A stretch of 64,000 bases of DNA from Hyalangium minutum (lineage in GTDB: Bacteria > Myxococcota > Myxococcia > Myxococcales > Myxococcaceae). Positions 11,060 to 64,000 of this stretch are shown in pieces (position 1 is the first letter of the stretch; every line of letters begins with the position of its first letter). The position numbers and the translations under genes were made by a program. Where the stretch lies: NCBI RefSeq assembly GCF_000737315.1, contig NZ_JMCB01000003.1:434001-498000 (forward strand). Direction: 5' to 3'. The notes under the pieces were generated by a model, which worked only from the letters and a program-made list of their open reading frames with translations, had not been told where the DNA came from and searched no databases.

Positions 11060-12286
11060 ATGAATAGCCAGTGGCAGAGAAGACGGCAGCCTGATGATGT
11101 GCCGACCCCCGTGGCGGTGGCCGTCTCCGATTATTGTCGGCGCGCCAAGGCCGCCGCCTCCCCGACTGAAGTCCGCGAAGCGCTCGCCCTCCTCTCCGAG
11201 GAAGATGACTTCCGTGTTCGTACCTTGACCGACACCGAGCCGGAAGTATCACCGCTCGGGCCTTTTGGCGTCGTCGACATTCTGAGGGGGACGCCTCCCC
11301 CCCTGGCCGCCCAGCGCCAGGCGTGCGGCTACTACGAGGTGGCGCAGGAACTGGCCCGGGTGCGCGAGGAGAAGACCCCCGCCCCTGCCCCCGTTGCGCC
11401 GCAGGTTCCCAGTTTCGCTCCGCCTCCGCCGCGTCCGGCTCCGGCCGAGAGCGCCGCCGCCGAGCCCGCTGGCAAGGGCAAGGCCGCCCGTCAGCCCGCC
11501 GAGTCCGTGCAGGATCGCATCGCGCCTCGCAAGCGCACCGGGCCTGCGCTCGAGGCCGAGGAGCCGACTGAGACGGACTCTTCGCGCTTCCTCAAGCGGG
11601 ATCTGCCCAAGCCGCGGGGCCGCTACACGCAGGTGGCTGCTCCCAAGGGCAGCTACCAGACGCTGGTGCGCACCGAGGGCAAGGACATCCTGGAGCCCGC
11701 CCTCTCGCAGAACGAGCACCGCTTCGCGCTGCTGAAGTCGCTGGCCGAGCACTACAACGGGGCCAAGGGCGAATTGTCCCTGGTGGATCTGGAGAGCGTG
11801 CTGCGCAGCCACGAGCTGATGGATCGGCTGACCGCGAAGGAGCGCCAGGCGCTGTTGTCCGCGTACACGGATCAGAAGGGGGCGGCGGGCCGCGTGGCCT
11901 GGGCCCTGGGCCTGAGCCCCTCGGAGCTGCAGCGGCTCACCGCGACGCTCGGCATGCAGGCCGAGGTCGAGGAGCTGCGCGAGCGCTTCCGCCGCGACGT
12001 CCTCGGCGCGCGCCACCTCACGCAGCGGCTGGACACGCTCGGCCGCGACAAGTACCTGGCTGATCTCGGCATCAAGAAACGCTTCACGGATGCGCTCCGG
12101 CGGGAACTGGAGGGGCTCGTGCAGGAAGAGCTCTCGGGAGCGAACGATCTGCCGGGGCTCGCGCTCGCCGTTGCCCGCAAGCACGGCGCGCCGCAAGAGC
12201 TCGTCCTCCGTGCCCTGGATCGCCTGGGGATGGCGGGCAAGCTGCGCGAGCAGCTCGCGGCTCACTCTCATCACTCTTCGCCCTGA
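11060..12286 (+). CDS. Hypothetical protein with Pro-rich linker and possible C-terminal HTH-like segments
   Basis: 408-aa ORF with typical GC3-rich codons; AAGRVAWALGLSPSELQRL resembles an HTH. Confidence 0.78.
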   Translation: MNSQWQRRRQPDDVPTPVAVAVSDYCRRAKAAASPTEVREALALLSEEDDFRVRTLTDTEPEVSPLGPFGVVDILRGTPPPLAAQRQACGYYEVAQELARVREEKTPAPAPVAPQVPSFAPPPPRPAPAESAAAEPAGKGKAARQPAESVQDRIAPRKRTGPALEAEEPTETDSSRFLKRDLPKPRGRYTQVAAPKGSYQTLVRTEGKDILEPALSQNEHRFALLKSLAEHYNGAKGELSLVDLESVLRSHELMDRLTAKERQALLSAYTDQKGAAGRVAWALGLSPSELQRLTATLGMQAEVEELRERFRRDVLGARHLTQRLDTLGRDKYLADLGIKKRFTDALRRELEGLVQEELSGANDLPGLALAVARKHGAPQELVLRALDRLGMAGKLREQLAAHSHHSSP

Positions 12287-52765: not shown

Positions 52766-58066
<5,301 letters not shown>

Positions 58067-58282
58067 GTGAGCCCCCCTGTCGATACCGGCCCCGACAGCC
58101 GGCCTGCATCGGCGCCCCCATCTTATGCCCTCAGGGCATCGGCGAGCGCCCTGGATCTGCCCGCGAACTGTGCAAAAGAGGATGACCCGATGGGATTCCT
58201 GGGAAACCTGAGAATCTCCGAAACGGCCCTTCTGCTCAGGGCACGAAGTTTCCCTTACGACCGGAAATTTCCGCGCTGCACG

Positions 58283-59440
58283 CTACCCCCCGCGTGCCCG
58301 CCGATCCGACGGCGGGTTCGCGTCCCGGACGAGCTCGTTGTACTGGTCGAGCAGATACTGTGAGAGCTGCCGGATATCCGAATGCGTGTTCTCAATCTGG
58401 TTCCACTCGACCTTCCGCCCTGCCCCGAAGTCCCAGAACCCACTGGTCCACCGGCAGATACGCTTCAGCGGCATCAGGTCCAGAGCGAACATGTCTCGCT
58501 TGAGGTGGATCCTGTTCCGATGCCGATCCGCGATGGCATCCATGAGCAGGCCCATGCTCTGGATTCCGGCGCCATGCATGAGGCGCGACTTCTTCGGTGA
58601 GATCCGCCAATCATCGGGGAAAACATCACTCACGGCGCCCCAGTAAGCGCAGAGGACGGTGACCATGGCATCAATGGCCCCCCCTGCCCCATCCTCCGAG
58701 CGGAACCGGTACAACACGCCCTCGTTTAGGCTGGTCTCCAGCATCTTCAAGATGGAGTTGTCCTTGATAATGCCGCTCGGGTTTGTCGGTGTCTGGATGA
58801 GCCCACGGAAGGGCGAGTGCCTCTTAGCGTTGAGGATGGTGAGGAGTTGGGACGGGAACCGCTTCTTGAGTAGATTCGACGGAAGCCGCGACTCCGTGTT
58901 GGGGAGCAACTCGTAGACAAGCCCCTTCGCGAGCGGCTTGGTGGAGTTGACCAGGATGAACTGGTCGGTCTGCTCGGCCACGTCGTCCGTGATGAAGGCC
59001 ACAACGCTCAGCGGAAACGAGTCGACGTTCGAGTCGCGAACAGCGGCCAGCCGCTGCTGCCCATCCACGACGAACGCGGGCTTGTCCTCGTCAAGCATCT
59101 CCTCTTCGAAAGGAACGCGCAGGGTTCCAGTCCGGGAGTACCCCTCGGGGTGGAACTCCGTGTCTGCGGGCTCGAAATGGACGCTTGAGTTGAAGGCCAG
59201 CACCACGGCGTTGGGGATCATCGGGTTGGGGCCTTCGATGAATCGCCGTATCTCGTCGATGTGCGAGAAAACCTCGGGCCGCTGATAGCCGCGAAGCGCC
59301 CCTTCTTCGTCCCTTCTCACACGGGAAATGGTCGCGAAGCGGTGGACCAACTTCCCGTCGACGGAGAAGACGTACAGCATCCGTTTCGGCCCTTGTTTCA
59401 CCTGAAGCGCGGGAAGCCGAAGCTCACGCTTTTTCGCCAT
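58283..59440 (-). CDS. dpdB: DGQHR-domain protein (DndB/DpdB-like)
   Basis: GYQR, IPNAVVLAF, FVVDGQQRLAA, QFILVNSTKPL; GGAGG RBS; directly downstream of dpdA. Confidence 0.82.
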   Translation of the reverse strand: MAKKRELRLPALQVKQGPKRMLYVFSVDGKLVHRFATISRVRRDEEGALRGYQRPEVFSHIDEIRRFIEGPNPMIPNAVVLAFNSSVHFEPADTEFHPEGYSRTGTLRVPFEEEMLDEDKPAFVVDGQQRLAAVRDSNVDSFPLSVVAFITDDVAEQTDQFILVNSTKPLAKGLVYELLPNTESRLPSNLLKKRFPSQLLTILNAKRHSPFRGLIQTPTNPSGIIKDNSILKMLETSLNEGVLYRFRSEDGAGGAIDAMVTVLCAYWGAVSDVFPDDWRISPKKSRLMHGAGIQSMGLLMDAIADRHRNRIHLKRDMFALDLMPLKRICRWTSGFWDFGAGRKVEWNQIENTHSDIRQLSQYLLDQYNELVRDANPPSDRRARGG

Positions 59441-59478
59441 GACAACACCCTCCAATGCCCACAGAAAGCCGCATCCCG

Positions 59479-60765
59479 CTAGGCGGCATCTTCCAAACCC
59501 AGACCCAGTTCGCTCCGAAGCTTTCGGTAGAAGACCCAGACGTTATGAAAGCCGCGCCGCCGGTTGCGCTCGGCCCCACGGAAGAGAATGACGTGGTGCC
59601 CGATGGAGCGGCAGACTTCGCACCCGCACTTCTTCCAGGGTTGGTCGGATAGGACCTCGCGGTACACCTCTGCCCTGCTGGTCCGTTTCTTGGCCGCACC
59701 CGCTTTCTTTTCCTGGGGCGAGCTCTCGGCGCACAGTTCCTCATAGTCGGTCAGGGCTGCGATCGATGCATTGATGTCCAACTTCCCCTTGTCGAAAGCT
59801 GCCATGGCCGCGAGCGCGGCTTTCTCCAGCTTGCGGGCCGTCTCCTGCCGGATGACACCGGAGGAGATTTTCTTTTGGAGCTTCGCGTTCCCCTCGACCT
59901 GGGGAATACGGATCGCGCTGTAAGTCCGGCTCAAGGTGTAATAGTTGTCCGAGGCATCCTTGAAGGCCTGTCTCAGCGGAGACGTGCCGTCGATGCTTGC
60001 CACGCCCAGGTCCGCAAATGCGTTCATGTGGTCGAGCCGGGTCACCCCCAGAAGATGAAGGCGGGTCTTCGGCTTCCGGACCTCTGCGATCTTCTCGAGC
60101 GACGCGAGGACCTCCGCCGTCTTGAGCGGAACCATGCCTCCAAGCGCGATATAGGAATAACCGATCGCCTGGAGTTCCTTGACCGCGTGAGCGTAGGACT
60201 TCGGGCTCCACCCCTGAGCGACACCAATGGGGGTAAAGCCCTCCTTCCGTGCCTTGCATCGGGTCCAGAACTGCTCCGCGAGGCTCAGGGTGATGGCCTG
60301 CCGCTCCTTGACCTCCTCTGGGGGCTGTTCACCCTTGGCGTCCCAGTCGGGCTGGTAGGCCAGGATCACATGATCCACCGACACCCCATAGTCGAAGCGG
60401 CAGTCGGAGTAGAAGTTGATGACTTCGTCAGCGGTGTACGGGGGGACCTTCTCCTTGACGTAGGTGAAGGCGCCACAGTCCCCCATGACCTCAAGGGGAT
60501 AAGGCACCTCCTCGATGCGCAGGAACTCCTTCACTCCGTTGCGCAAGAGCCGGTGCTTCTGGCCAATGGTGTAGCGGCTGCCCACCTGGCCGTAGCCATC
60601 GACGATGCCCTTGGAGACCAGCAAGCCGTCATAGGCGCGCGAGCGGAAGACTTCGTGGGCGTACAGATCGTCACGTTGCCTGACCCGGAGATCGTCCCGC
60701 CGTTCGGTCTCGAAGTCGAAGCTTGGGTCGACTAGGTCTTGGCTGTCAGGGAAGAAGAACTTCAT
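59479..60765 (-). CDS. dpdA: TGT-like DNA 7-deazaguanine transglycosylase DpdA
   Basis: MKFFFPDSQD, GDCGAFTY, SVDHVI, GVAQGW, ALGGMVP, HLLGV, SIDGTSP, Zn-site CGCEVC, RRRGFHN; context of que genes plus DGQHR. Confidence 0.88.
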   Translation of the reverse strand: MKFFFPDSQDLVDPSFDFETERRDDLRVRQRDDLYAHEVFRSRAYDGLLVSKGIVDGYGQVGSRYTIGQKHRLLRNGVKEFLRIEEVPYPLEVMGDCGAFTYVKEKVPPYTADEVINFYSDCRFDYGVSVDHVILAYQPDWDAKGEQPPEEVKERQAITLSLAEQFWTRCKARKEGFTPIGVAQGWSPKSYAHAVKELQAIGYSYIALGGMVPLKTAEVLASLEKIAEVRKPKTRLHLLGVTRLDHMNAFADLGVASIDGTSPLRQAFKDASDNYYTLSRTYSAIRIPQVEGNAKLQKKISSGVIRQETARKLEKAALAAMAAFDKGKLDINASIAALTDYEELCAESSPQEKKAGAAKKRTSRAEVYREVLSDQPWKKCGCEVCRSIGHHVILFRGAERNRRRGFHNVWVFYRKLRSELGLGLEDAA

Positions 60766-61709
60766 GGAGCTTTCCGTTGCGTGTCGTAGAGGCGATTGAA
60801 GCGCTCCATCTGGCACTTCTGCCCCGAGTTTCGGAACCTCTGGAGCAAGCCGCTGCGCGACTGCCGGGGGTTTTCTTCAAGTTCGTTCCGGATAAACTGC
60901 AGCACCTCGCCATCAGTGACGGGACTCCGGAGATTCTCAGGCCAGCCCCCCGTCTTGCGGGAGAGTTCGGCGACTCGTTCTCGCACGGCTGAGAGTTCCA
61001 AGCCCGTCCTGCGGGCTTCGAGCAGCACATGGCGTGCGACACGGGCGTAGAGCGAGGCCACCCCACCGCCCAGCGCGAAGACCAGCGCCCCCGGGCATTT
61101 GATCCAATGGGCACCAAGCGGCCCGGTCTGCAAAGGTGAGTCACTCGAGATGACGAAGAGCTTCTGCTGGGAGTGTCCAAGTTGGCTGGCGCGGACCAGA
61201 TCGGGCTCCATTGCGTCAACATAGGTGGAAGGAGCCACAATCATGAGGACGGCGTTCCGGTTGTTCTCGACCAACTCAGCGAGCGAGCGCGGCGTCTTCT
61301 TGGGCCGGTGTTCTCCCTGGGACAGCGCCTCCCACCAAGCCTGACGCTCGGCTTGGCCGCTCTTTCCAGCGGGAGCCACCGCGTCCTCCGACTTGCCCGT
61401 GAAGGTCGCCGAATAAGCATGAGCGGACCAGTTGCAGTTCCACAGGCCGTAGCCCGCAGAGGCCACCCATAGTTGGACCTCAAGCCCGGCCTCACGCCCA
61501 TCCGCGGGGAGCGAGCGGATCACCGACCAGTGCTGCCCGCCGTACAGGTCCAAGGCGGCAACCTCCCGCGTCTTCGAGGTCGCGAGCCGCTGACACCAAG
61601 CCGCAGCGCGGGTGGAAATCTCCCCTGCCGGAACTCGGGACAAGCGGAGTTCTGAAGGCACTTCCAGGAACTTCTTGTACGTGCAACTGGCAACCACGTG
61701 AACCTGCAT
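60762..61709 (-). CDS. Hypothetical protein, YaaA/DUF328-like (candidate DpdC counterpart)
   Basis: VASCTYKK...ALDLYGGQHW...VASAGYGL resembles YaaA/DUF6884-type motifs; stop overlaps dpdA start (ATGA). Family call is inference. Confidence 0.7.
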   Translation of the reverse strand: MQVHVVASCTYKKFLEVPSELRLSRVPAGEISTRAAAWCQRLATSKTREVAALDLYGGQHWSVIRSLPADGREAGLEVQLWVASAGYGLWNCNWSAHAYSATFTGKSEDAVAPAGKSGQAERQAWWEALSQGEHRPKKTPRSLAELVENNRNAVLMIVAPSTYVDAMEPDLVRASQLGHSQQKLFVISSDSPLQTGPLGAHWIKCPGALVFALGGGVASLYARVARHVLLEARRTGLELSAVRERVAELSRKTGGWPENLRSPVTDGEVLQFIRNELEENPRQSRSGLLQRFRNSGQKCQMERFNRLYDTQRKAP

Positions 61710-61730
61710 GGAGCAGCGAGGGAGCAGCGT

Positions 61731-62102
61731 CTAGCCGCGCCCCTCATCCTCCCCAGCATAGATGCACCCACTCGTGCAGGTCTCCCGCACCACGACGCTG
61801 CTCAGTTCCGGGAGGCTTGGCTTGAGCCGTTGCCAGATCCAGCGCGCCAGATTCTCGCTGGTGGGGTTTTCCAGCCCGGGGACCTCGTTGAGGTAGTGGT
61901 GATCGAGCGTCTCATGCAAGGGCTGGAACGCCGCCTTGAGATCCGCGAAGTCCCGGATCCAACCCACCTGGGGATCCACCGCTCCCCGGATATGGATCTC
62001 TACCGAGAAGGAGTGGCCGTGCAACCGTCGGCACTTGTGTCCCTCGGGAGTGAAGGGGAGCCGGTGTGCAGCCTCGAAGGTGAACGCCTTAAAGATCTCC
62101 AT
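61731..62102 (-). CDS. queD: 6-carboxy-5,6,7,8-tetrahydropterin synthase
   Basis: [50 protein letters not shown]. Confidence 0.95.
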
Positions 62103-62110
62103 GCGCCACC

Positions 62111-62752
62111 TTAGGGGATACCGAGGAGTTTGTGGGTCTGCAAGGACAGCCTCCAGCGCGGATGCGCGAGGCAGTACTCGACACAGGACTGGGTGTGTCG
62201 CTCACGGTCGGGACCATCGAGCGGCTGCAGGAAGAAGTGGGAGAACTCCAGGGACTCGAAGTTCTCGGGAGGCATGCCCGCCTGGGGATAGACCAGCTTG
62301 AGTTCCTGGCCCGCGCGCAGGGCAAGCTGAGTGTTCGCCTTAGGGCTGACGCAGATCCAGTCAATGCCCGGCGGTGGCAGGAGCGTCCCATTGGTCTCGA
62401 TCGCTATCTCGAACGACCGGCGGTGGAGTTCCTCGAGGAGGCTCACATCGAGTTGCAGGAGCGGCTCGCCTCCGGTGCAGACCACGAGCCTCTTGCCGTG
62501 CCGCCCGCGCCAAGTGGCCTCTACCGCCGCAGCCAGTTCTTCAGCATTCCGGAAACTGCCACCTCCTGCGCCATTGGTGCCGACAAAATCGGTATCGCAC
62601 CACCGCGAGCAGCCACCGGCTCCGTGAGGCCGGTCCGCCTCGCGGCCGCTCCAGAGGTTGCAGCCGGCAAACCGCAGGAAAACAGCGGCCCGGCCTGCCT
62701 GACCGCCCTCTCCCTGAAGAGTATAGAAGATCTCCTTGACTGCGTACGCCAT
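62111..62752 (-). CDS. queE: 7-carboxy-7-deazaguanine synthase (radical SAM)
   Basis: [52 protein letters not shown]. Confidence 0.95.
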
Positions 62753-62755
62753 CCC

Positions 62756-63457
62756 CTACTCCGCCCGGTACCGTGCTGGATCTTTCGCACCGGCTTCGCG
62801 GAATCCCTTGAGCCGAAGCTGGCAGGAATCGCAGTGGCCACAGGCCTCGCCCAGGGGCGACGGATCGTAACAACTCAAGGTGATCCCATAGTTCACCCCC
62901 AGCGTGAGTCCAGCGCGGATGATCTCGGCCTTGCTCAGCGAAATAAGGGGGGTATGAATCCGGAGCCGCTGGTGCCCTTCTACTCCGGCCTTGGTAGCCA
63001 AGTTCGCCAGTCGCTCATAGGCCTCGATGTACTCCGGGCGGCAGTCCGGGTAGCCCGAGTAATCGAGCGCGTTGACTCCGATGAAGACATCGCTCGCGCC
63101 GAGCACCTCGGCCCAGGCCAGCGCGAAGGACAGGAAGATGGTGTTGCGCGCCGGCACATAGGTGACCGGAATCCCTTGGGATATCTCGGACGCGGGCCGA
63201 TCCTTGGGCACAGCGATGTCCGCCGTCAGGGCTGAGCTCCCGAACATGCTCAGATCGATCTGAGTGATCTCATGCCGGACGGCACCCAGGCTAGCGGCCA
63301 CGCGCTTTGCCGCCTCAAGTTCCACCTCGTGCCGCTGGCCGTAGCGAAAGCTGAGAGCATAGGGCATGAACCCCTCGGACTGGGCCATGGCGAGTGCCGT
63401 GGCTGAGTCGAGACCACCACTGAGGAGCACCACCGCCGTGCGTTCCGTGCCGGACAT
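62756..63457 (-). CDS. queC: 7-cyano-7-deazaguanine synthase
   Basis: [45 protein letters not shown]; ATG 63457 with GGAG RBS. Confidence 0.96.
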
Positions 63458-63663
63458 GCCATCTCCCAACCGCGCTCGTCGGATCCACACGAACCACGGC
63501 TACCCGCCGTTAGGCGGGCACCCGATAGCACACGCGTTCGCTGTTTCACAGGCGCGGTCGCCATCCTACGTGACGATCCTACTGTGCAGGTAGATAGCAC
63601 CCTGGGCGTTTTAGGCAACTTAACAGGTTGTATCTGGAGTGCTCCGCCGCTCGCTTCCCAGGC

Positions 63664-64000
63664 TTACGAAGCGCAGTGCCCGTCCTCTGCAACTCCTGTA
63701 AACTGCGCGTCGCGGTCCTTACGGTGCTTCTCCGGGGCTTGGCGAGCCCCGGGGCCGGAACGCGGGACTTGACTCGCGGCGCGAACTCGCGTCTCAGGTA
63801 GTACCCCCACACATCTTAGTATGAGGCGGCCCTCGACGGGCCGAGCATATGCCTCGGCCAGCTTGACACCCCAGGGGATTCCGCGGAGGCGCTCCTGGGA
63901 TGCCGAAGCCGCCTCAAGGTGGGCGGGCCCGCCCTGCCCATTCCAAGCAGAAGTGCTCAACAGGTTGATTGCACCCGCGACGGTGCCTCGATAATGTCGG
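63664..64000 (-). CDS. Possible 3' end of a gene entering from beyond the window
   Basis: Minus-strand frame of the 63664..63960 ORF stays open to the window edge (RHYRGTVAGAINLLSTSAW...); no recognisable motif. Confidence 0.25.
   Translation of the reverse strand, partial: RHYRGTVAGAINLLSTSAWNGQGGPAHLEAASASQERLRGIPWGVKLAEAYARPVEGRLILRCVGVLPETRVRAASQVPRSGPGARQAPEKHRKDRDAQFTGVAEDGHCAS

Follow-up and report, generated by a model that had tools for sequence, protein, structure and literature searches.

What is the gene that separates queD from dpdA in the myxobacterium Hyalangium minutum? The window analysed here (64,000 nucleotides of contig NZ_JMCB01000003.1, positions 434,001 to 498,000) carries six minus-strand genes arranged head to tail, separated by gaps of no more than about 40 nt, and the fourth of these is an open reading frame (ORF) of 315 codons. 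A first-pass annotation, made from the sequence alone, took this ORF for a candidate divergent DpdC, possibly with an added DNA-binding domain. From homology, and by analogy with the characterised system of Salmonella, the gene is very probably dpdC, so that the series reads queC-queE-queD-dpdC-dpdA-dpdB and its product would be the third modification enzyme of the H. minutum Dpd 7-deazaguanine DNA-modification module, converting 2'-deoxy-7-cyano-7-deazaguanosine (dPreQ0) to 2'-deoxy-7-amido-7-deazaguanosine (dADG). This work itself shows to which family the protein belongs, how the operon is built, which motifs are conserved, what fold is predicted and that selection is purifying; the enzymology of DpdA, DpdB and DpdC is taken from the literature on Salmonella Montevideo.

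The recorded gene call for this position covers only 263 residues and begins at a TTG codon corresponding to L53. It falls 52 N-terminal residues short (61554-61709) and lacks the invariant CxxxK, which is the N-terminal motif with the strongest conservation. In homologues near and far the sequence opens approximately with M-x-V-x-V-V-A-S-C, and the 315-residue form with its ATG at 61709 is therefore taken to be correct. An exact-sequence look-up of this form returned no record, because the recorded call is the 263-residue one. At E≤1e-3 a profile built from 18 relatives matched 2619 representative clusters, defined at the 50% identity level, of which 1070 reached E≤1e-30. Nearly all of the best 150 representatives are 300-335 residues long, with a match that runs from near position 3 to near position 315. 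An AlphaFold2 model of the full-length protein, calculated from a 74-sequence alignment, reached a predicted local distance difference test score (pLDDT) of 92.8 and a predicted template modelling score of 0.82. The ratio of nonsynonymous to synonymous substitution rates (dN/dS) in comparison with three sister loci is 0.21. The size of the family, the selection on the gene and the quality of the model exclude a chance ORF; this is a real conserved gene.

The protein was matched end to end by DpdC models of PADLOC: its residues 2-311 fit positions 3-293 of the 299 in PDLC02817 at E=1.1e-64, and its residues 1-310 fit positions 2-313 of the 319 in PDLC02818 at E=9.2e-50. Eight more DpdC models of the same collection also matched. 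A tblastn search of plasmids gave one full-length match, on pPOL9A of Enterobacter cloacae (NZ_CP086409.1 57365-58315). This gene, annotated 'hypothetical protein', lies directly upstream of dpdA-dpdB in a cluster in which dpdA, B, D, K, J, H, G and F were all named by the NCBI Prokaryotic Genome Annotation Pipeline (PGAP). It corresponds to PDLC02818 at 3.3e-158 and was used here as the canonical DpdC comparator, standing for the enterobacterial type found in Salmonella Montevideo. When a profile of 74 relatives of the H. minutum protein was aligned to it with hhalign, the match extended over residues 3-314 with a probability of 99.94% (E=2.5e-36). The two proteins share a length of about 315 residues, a two-domain architecture, the CxxxK and SAxxG motifs and a position beside dpdA-dpdB, and both match PDLC02817 and PDLC02818. 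They differ in which model fits best, PDLC02818 for the enterobacterial protein and PDLC02817 for that of H. minutum, and in C299, which is invariant in the myxobacterial and actinobacterial set but is Phe in Enterobacter. The loci differ in that queC, queE and queD are part of the same operon in H. minutum, which is without dpdD-K. Co-occurrence with dpdA across genomes, a check proposed in the first-pass annotation, was borne out. Among 32 loci from species-representative genomes of Myxococcota, Actinomycetota and single metagenome-assembled genomes of Gemmatimonadaceae, Thermoanaerobaculia and Eisenbacteria, DpdA and DpdB adjoin the DpdC relative in all 29 that have enough flank, and most also carry queC-queE-queD upstream.

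All of the motifs that had been picked out by eye are present in the protein: S8-C9-T-Y-K12-K13, A52-L-D-L-Y56-G-G58 and S84-A-G-Y-G-L89 towards the N-terminus and DGEVLQFIRNEL (beginning at residue 266), SRSGLLQRFR and RFNRLY in the C-terminus. Their suggested resemblance to DUF6884 and YaaA is real, as DUF6884 is defined by CxxxK and LSAxxG and is connected distantly to YaaA by Pfam's authors, who give both a 'cantaloupe' fold in which the cleft is positively charged (PMC11701544). DUF6884 is also the domain listed for dpdC by GATOR-GC (PMC11888242), and the relation between DpdC and DUF328 stated in the first-pass annotation was found in the literature (PMC5699537). The reverse complement of the segment coding for A83-S-A-G-Y-G88 reads GCC TCT GCG GGC TAC GGC. 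Every family-invariant column is retained in the H. minutum protein, and C9 and K13 are kept in both Enterobacter DpdC (TTCTNGK) and the DUF6884 protein of plasmid R27 (SCTKGK). Over residues ~47-107 several relatives gave sub-threshold matches, at E=4e-6 to 3e-5 for DUF6884 and at E=5e-4 to 0.02 for YaaA/H2O2_YaaD, and hhalign against the R27 protein (WP_001395532.1) aligned residues 20-230 at 99.4% (E=2.8e-21). The best match of the model in the PDB by Foldseek was E. coli YaaA (5caj; probability 0.97, E=0.013) and the best viral matches, in BFVD, were to DUF6884 and 'YaaA' proteins of phages (E=2e-4 to 8e-3). A profile search of PDB sequences gave no match. In the structural comparison that had been called for, YaaA thus comes first by rank in the PDB, but the similarity is weak, as the figures given below show. 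With DUF6884, represented by Bacillus subtilis YfjM and the R27 protein, the N-terminal domain is homologous and has CxxxK and LSAxxG in common; the H. minutum protein gives no reportable Pfam score, and in the R27 protein the C-terminal helical domain is missing, its gene lying away from any dpdA/B. With E. coli YaaA (DUF328/UPF0246, PF03883) the aligned LSGLYG region is shared and the fold may be, but the relationship is very remote, there is no Pfam match, the C-terminal half is unlike and yaaA has no dpd context. As far as its sequence and structural matches can tell, the H. minutum protein is a remote relative of YaaA/DUF328 and not a member of that family.

Matches to the N-terminal two-thirds of DpdC were also found in 1825 plasmid records, mostly enterobacterial (Klebsiella, Escherichia, Salmonella, Enterobacter). 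Among the matches listed, including that on the IncHI1 plasmid R27, the gene is annotated DUF6884 and lacks the C-terminal domain. The one context examined, that of the R27 gene of Salmonella Typhi (NC_002305.1 147044-147694), has no dpdA/B nearby. The annotated start of this gene looks too short, since an upstream ATG adds MAASRITHLITSCTKGKH, which carries the CxxxK motif.

QueD, QueE and QueC make 7-cyano-7-deazaguanine (preQ0) from the product of GTP cyclohydrolase I, so that the operon would cover the path from this pterin intermediate to dADG. In the mechanism proposed for H. minutum, the three Que enzymes of the operon would draw on the product of the housekeeping GTP cyclohydrolase I; DpdA, driven by the ATPase DpdB, would exchange guanines in DNA for the resulting preQ0; and DpdC alone would then act on the DNA, hydrating the nitrile of dPreQ0 to the carboxamide of dADG. 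It has been shown that Salmonella DpdC converts preQ0-DNA to ADG-DNA independently of DpdA/B (PMC10164549). The literature that was searched contained no published account of how DpdC hydrates a nitrile on DNA. Other enzymes that act on nitriles use a Cys residue: QueF forms a Cys-thioimide and nitrilases use a Cys-Glu-Lys arrangement. By analogy, the invariant Cys9 of CxxxK may attack the nitrile to give a thioimidate that water would resolve to the amide, with Lys13 and the ASAGYG loop assisting. The modified base would first be flipped into the cleft of the DUF6884/YaaA-like N-terminal domain, a movement that has been modelled for the DUF6884 protein YfjM (PMC11701544), while the mildly basic helical C-terminal domain may help to hold the DNA. 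The Cys-x3-Lys pair and the ASAGYG loop are the obvious targets for mutation in the study of nitrile hydration on DNA by DpdC.

A number of points weigh against the identification of this gene as a dADG-forming dpdC. Scans of the 315-residue protein with Pfam and NCBIfam gave nothing at E≤1. The gathering threshold of Pfam DUF6884 (PF21818), 30 bits, is reached by the R27 protein (32 bits) but not by relatives of the H. minutum protein (24.6-27.6 bits), nor by the canonical DpdC of pPOL9A (23.3 bits), which was itself left unnamed by PGAP. For this reason the silence of the two libraries is read as a gap in them and not as unusual divergence. Identity to enterobacterial DpdC is only ~25%. Position 11, within CxxxK, is Tyr in H. 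minutum and is D, E, Q or N in 70 of the 74 aligned sequences. The structural similarity to YaaA 5caj is weak (template modelling score 0.33-0.39, 11% identity) and hhalign against E. coli YaaA, which aligned LSGLYG with ASAGYG, was not significant (E=0.38). The conversion of dPreQ0 to dADG is known only for the Salmonella enzyme and is predicted for the subfamily to which the H. minutum protein belongs; the thioimidate chemistry is carried over from QueF and nitrilases, and the roles given to Cys9 and to the C-terminal domain are likewise predictions. At the level of the locus, tblastn searches with DpdD, E, F, G, H, I, J and K found nothing in the window or in the 7.5 kb beyond it (L001), and a second dpdB gene seen in sister loci, here called dpdB', is missing. 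The loss of the restriction genes together with dpdB' could mean that the module is on its way to decay, though its six ORFs are intact. The lack of dpdD-K does not serve as a criterion against DpdC identity, because islands that carry dpdC but no restriction operon form a class already described, one example being that of Archangium (PMC11888242).

Some of these points could be taken to mean that a DpdC-family enzyme is present whose chemistry in the myxobacterial and actinobacterial subfamily differs from that in Salmonella, giving a product other than dADG or acting on another DNA lesion as has been proposed for YfjM. The low identity to enterobacterial DpdC would fit such a difference, as would the rate of change of DpdC, two to three times that of its operon partners, and the existence of DUF6884 members that have no dpd context and are carried by IncHI plasmids and phages. 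On the other hand, the homology is full-length, CxxxK and SAGYG are invariant, and the genes are strictly adjacent to dpdA/dpdB and the preQ0 genes. Furthermore, 7-deazapurine DNA modification has been validated both in the actinobacterium Kineococcus radiotolerans and in Salmonella, as quoted in PMC11888242. A divergent product is accordingly considered improbable. Judged by sequence, the 315-residue protein is a regular DpdC of the well-populated subfamily PDLC02817, neither unusually divergent nor equipped with an extra domain, and the epithet 'divergent' can be dropped, the canonical Enterobacter protein also falling below the DUF6884 threshold.

The history of the locus bears on the suggestion of decay and also on the meaning of the overlap between dpdC and dpdA. 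As described in the first-pass annotation, the gene lies between queD, which ends at 61731, 21 nt before the dpdC ATG, and dpdA, with which it overlaps. The forward strand at 60762-60765 reads tcat and so the coding strand reads ATGA, the dpdC stop TGA occupying 60764-60762 and the dpdA ATG 60765-60763. The sister loci of H. gracile (L037), a metagenome contig (L038) and Myxococcus sp. Y35 (L002) have the order queC-E-D-dpdC-dpdB'-dpdA-dpdB, with dpdB', a second DpdB paralogue, lying between dpdC and dpdA. dpdB is the dpd gene most often found duplicated (PMC11888242). In all three sister loci DpdB' ends in ...Q[Y/H]QRKA[P/S]* (around 12050-12086) and is joined to dpdA by the same ATGA. The DpdC of H. 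minutum ends in ...RLYDT-QRKAP*, and the DNA alignment turns from dpdC-like to like the 3' end of dpdB' at 60779/60780. As both the QRKAP tail and the ATGA junction match those of DpdB', the overlap of dpdC with dpdA arose when dpdB' was deleted precisely and in frame. Having been inherited from dpdB', the overlap gives no evidence of a special relationship between DpdC and DpdA, and the coupling that had been read into it is not supported. The same tail is present in a 79%-identical relative (P0002), which therefore shares the deletion, and the arrangement has thus persisted.

If the module had become unneeded after the loss of dpdB' and dpdE-H, dpdC might be a remnant that is drifting. The deletion itself and the lack of a dpdD-K homologue are what would be expected, as is the unusual Tyr in CxxxK, and DpdC shares only 74% identity with its H. 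gracile counterpart whereas the other operon proteins share 86-93%, with DpdA at 93%. This difference in rate is seen beyond H. minutum, with dN/dS values of 0.15-0.22 for dpdC and 0.05-0.12 for its operon partners. Between loci with complete Dpd systems dpdC has a dN/dS of 0.15-0.22, which is equal to the 0.21 found here, and there is no sign of relaxed selection particular to the H. minutum gene. With all six ORFs intact, every family-invariant column kept, and a deletion that is precise, in frame and common to P0002, a decaying dpdC is a very improbable explanation, and an intact dpdC is still the better account of the gene.

The C-terminus had been described as a separate basic helical domain, possibly added and possibly DNA-binding. 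Residues 228-315 are indeed helical in the model and mildly basic, with 17 K/R against 12 D/E. The domain is covered by the PADLOC DpdC models and by Enterobacter DpdC. Almost every one of the 150 best representatives has it too, and it is missing only in the plasmid DUF6884 relatives. Because it is matched in essentially all members, including Enterobacter DpdC, it is part of the standard DpdC architecture and not an addition. When modelled alone the domain reached a pLDDT of 76. Foldseek with this model gave nothing significant, the top ranks being helix-turn-helix, paired-domain and winged-helix proteins at E≥2.6, and a search of PDB sequences with the C-domain profile gave nothing, so that the proposed DNA-binding fold was not upheld. 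Binding of DNA by this domain is plausible for an enzyme with a DNA substrate, but is only suggested. That the whole protein is instead a non-catalytic DNA-binding or regulatory accessory of DpdA/DpdB, such as a targeting factor, might be argued from this basic helical domain, from the helix-turn-helix and winged-helix proteins heading the non-significant Foldseek list and from the annotation of YaaA as a DNA-binding protein, but it can be all but dismissed. The unvarying Cys and Lys and the motifs conserved in the cleft indicate an enzyme, Salmonella DpdC is catalytic without DpdA/B (PMC10164549), and the dpdA overlap originates in a deleted dpdB', not in a conserved dpdC-dpdA feature.

The central inference of the first-pass annotation, that the gene is the DpdC of the cluster, is thus supported. 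As such it adds one more member to an established family, and its island is of a type already described; there is little novelty in it and a specialist would not be surprised by it. The assignment is of value for annotation, as the record has only a shortened hypothetical protein here, with no Pfam or NCBIfam match, and naming it dpdC would complete a self-sufficient preQ0-to-dADG DNA-modification operon in a myxobacterium. The analysis also yielded a corrected start codon for dpdC, a history of deletion at the locus, a list of invariant residues and the description of a neighbouring cassette. The features of the locus are collected in Table 1.

Table 1. Coordinates in the window of the genes of the que-dpd operon and of the domains and motifs of DpdC.
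Feature	Position	Strand	Basis
queC, 233 residues, preQ0 synthase	62756..63457	(-)	precomputed Pfam QueC PF06508; 92% identity to H. gracile queC
queE, 213 residues, radical-SAM 7-carboxy-7-deazaguanine synthase	62111..62752	(-)	named by position in queC-E-D block and size
queD, 123 residues	61731..62102	(-)	Pfam PTPS E=8e-39; TIGR03367 QueD E=2.6e-32
dpdC (probable), 315 residues and stop	60762..61709	(-)	ATG-initiated ORF; PADLOC DpdC models and hhalign to Enterobacter DpdC
N-terminal alpha/beta domain (~residues 1-230), DUF6884/YaaA-like, presumed catalytic	61020..61709	(-)	hhalign, Foldseek
CxxxK motif, C9-T-Y-K-K13	61671..61685	(-)	C9, K13 invariant in 74/74 aligned relatives
(L/A)SAxxG motif, A83-S-A-G-Y-G88	61446..61463	(-)	S84, A85, G86, Y87, G88 invariant in 74/74
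C-terminal helical domain (~residues 231-315), DNA binding only suggested	60765..61019	(-)	PADLOC models, Enterobacter alignment, family representatives
last five dpdC codons, Q-R-K-A-P, from 3' end of deleted dpdB'	60765..60779	(-)	DNA alignment and DpdB' tails
dpdA, 428 residues, DNA guanine transglycosylase	59479..60765	(-)	NCBIfam NF041059 DpdA E=1.1e-172; PADLOC DpdA E=2.2e-178
dpdB, 385 residues from ATG at 59440, DGQHR/ParB-like ATPase partner of DpdA	58283..59440	(-)	NCBIfam NF041060 E=2.2e-140; PADLOC DpdB E=1.5e-144

Among the other genes of the operon, the start of dpdA at 60765 (MKFFFPDSQ) aligns from position 1 of the NCBIfam DpdA model. For queE the sole recorded domain match is a weak precomputed Radical_SAM, and in related dpd loci copies of queE that are 59-86% identical lie between queC and queD. 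A sub-threshold match to Rfam CRISPR-DR20 inside queE (62610-62646 (+), 26.6 bits against a gathering threshold of 42, E=0.024) was taken as chance. An Rfam scan of 57900-64000 found no preQ1 riboswitch, including upstream of queC, and a promoter and terminator scan of the same region found a single terminator-like site and nothing like a promoter, which is less than shuffled sequences give. A scan of the whole window for transfer RNA genes found none. Downstream of dpdB, on the same strand and after a gap of 216 nt, lies a 1766-residue gene (52766-58066 (-)) with Ser/Thr kinase, AAA_16, GAF and histidine-kinase ATPase domains and a host-like guanine plus cytosine (GC) content. Only weak domain matches to it were found in related dpd loci.

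In sister loci restriction genes are present near the modification genes. dpdE, F and G and an H-sized gene flank queC in L037 and L038, and in the Sorangium locus (L007) DpdE, F and G follow dpdB. One DpdE match in the search with dpdD-K proved to be an artefact of an ORF overlapping the end of dpdB in L007. In H. minutum the place held in sister loci by dpdE-H is occupied by a six-gene cassette that lies beyond position 64000 (L041 7852-22874, JMCB01000003.1; part is L001 1-7212) and is transcribed divergently from queC. Its proteins are of 374, 343, 957, 1080, 1607 and 1049 residues. The 1607-residue protein is a DEAD helicase whose N-terminal 440 residues match PADLOC DpdJ at 6.6e-68 (tblastn with Enterobacter dpdJ, 2e-19), and the 957- and 1080-residue proteins have AAA_22/AAA_16-like P-loops. 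PADLOC found nothing for the 374-, 343-, 957- and 1049-residue proteins and only weak LmuB-like matches (E=0.003-0.005) for that of 1080 residues; a weak, below-threshold Pfam PD-(D/E)XK match was seen in the M. xanthus orthologue of the 1049-residue protein and in that orthologue only.

The four genes next to queC were considered as conserved partners of dpdC and rejected, as none of the 32 related dpd loci has a homologue of them. The six-gene cassette as a whole, at 74-85% identity, adjoins an operon of the cyclic oligonucleotide-based antiphage signalling system (CBASS) in Myxococcus xanthus CP017169.1, where there is no dpdABC within 10 kb, and is also present in a metagenome contig. Its position beside CBASS without dpdABC indicates that the cassette is an independent module, and it is probably defensive. 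It is rather unlikely that dpdC-dpdA-dpdB of H. minutum works with this cassette in place of the canonical DpdD-K; if it did, the cassette would be a new restriction module that reads dADG or dPreQ0 marks. The GC content is 60-65% in the que-dpd operon (58283-63457) and in the cassette beyond queC and 68-70% on the dpdB side, the only flank examined, and the lower value is consistent with a horizontally acquired island.

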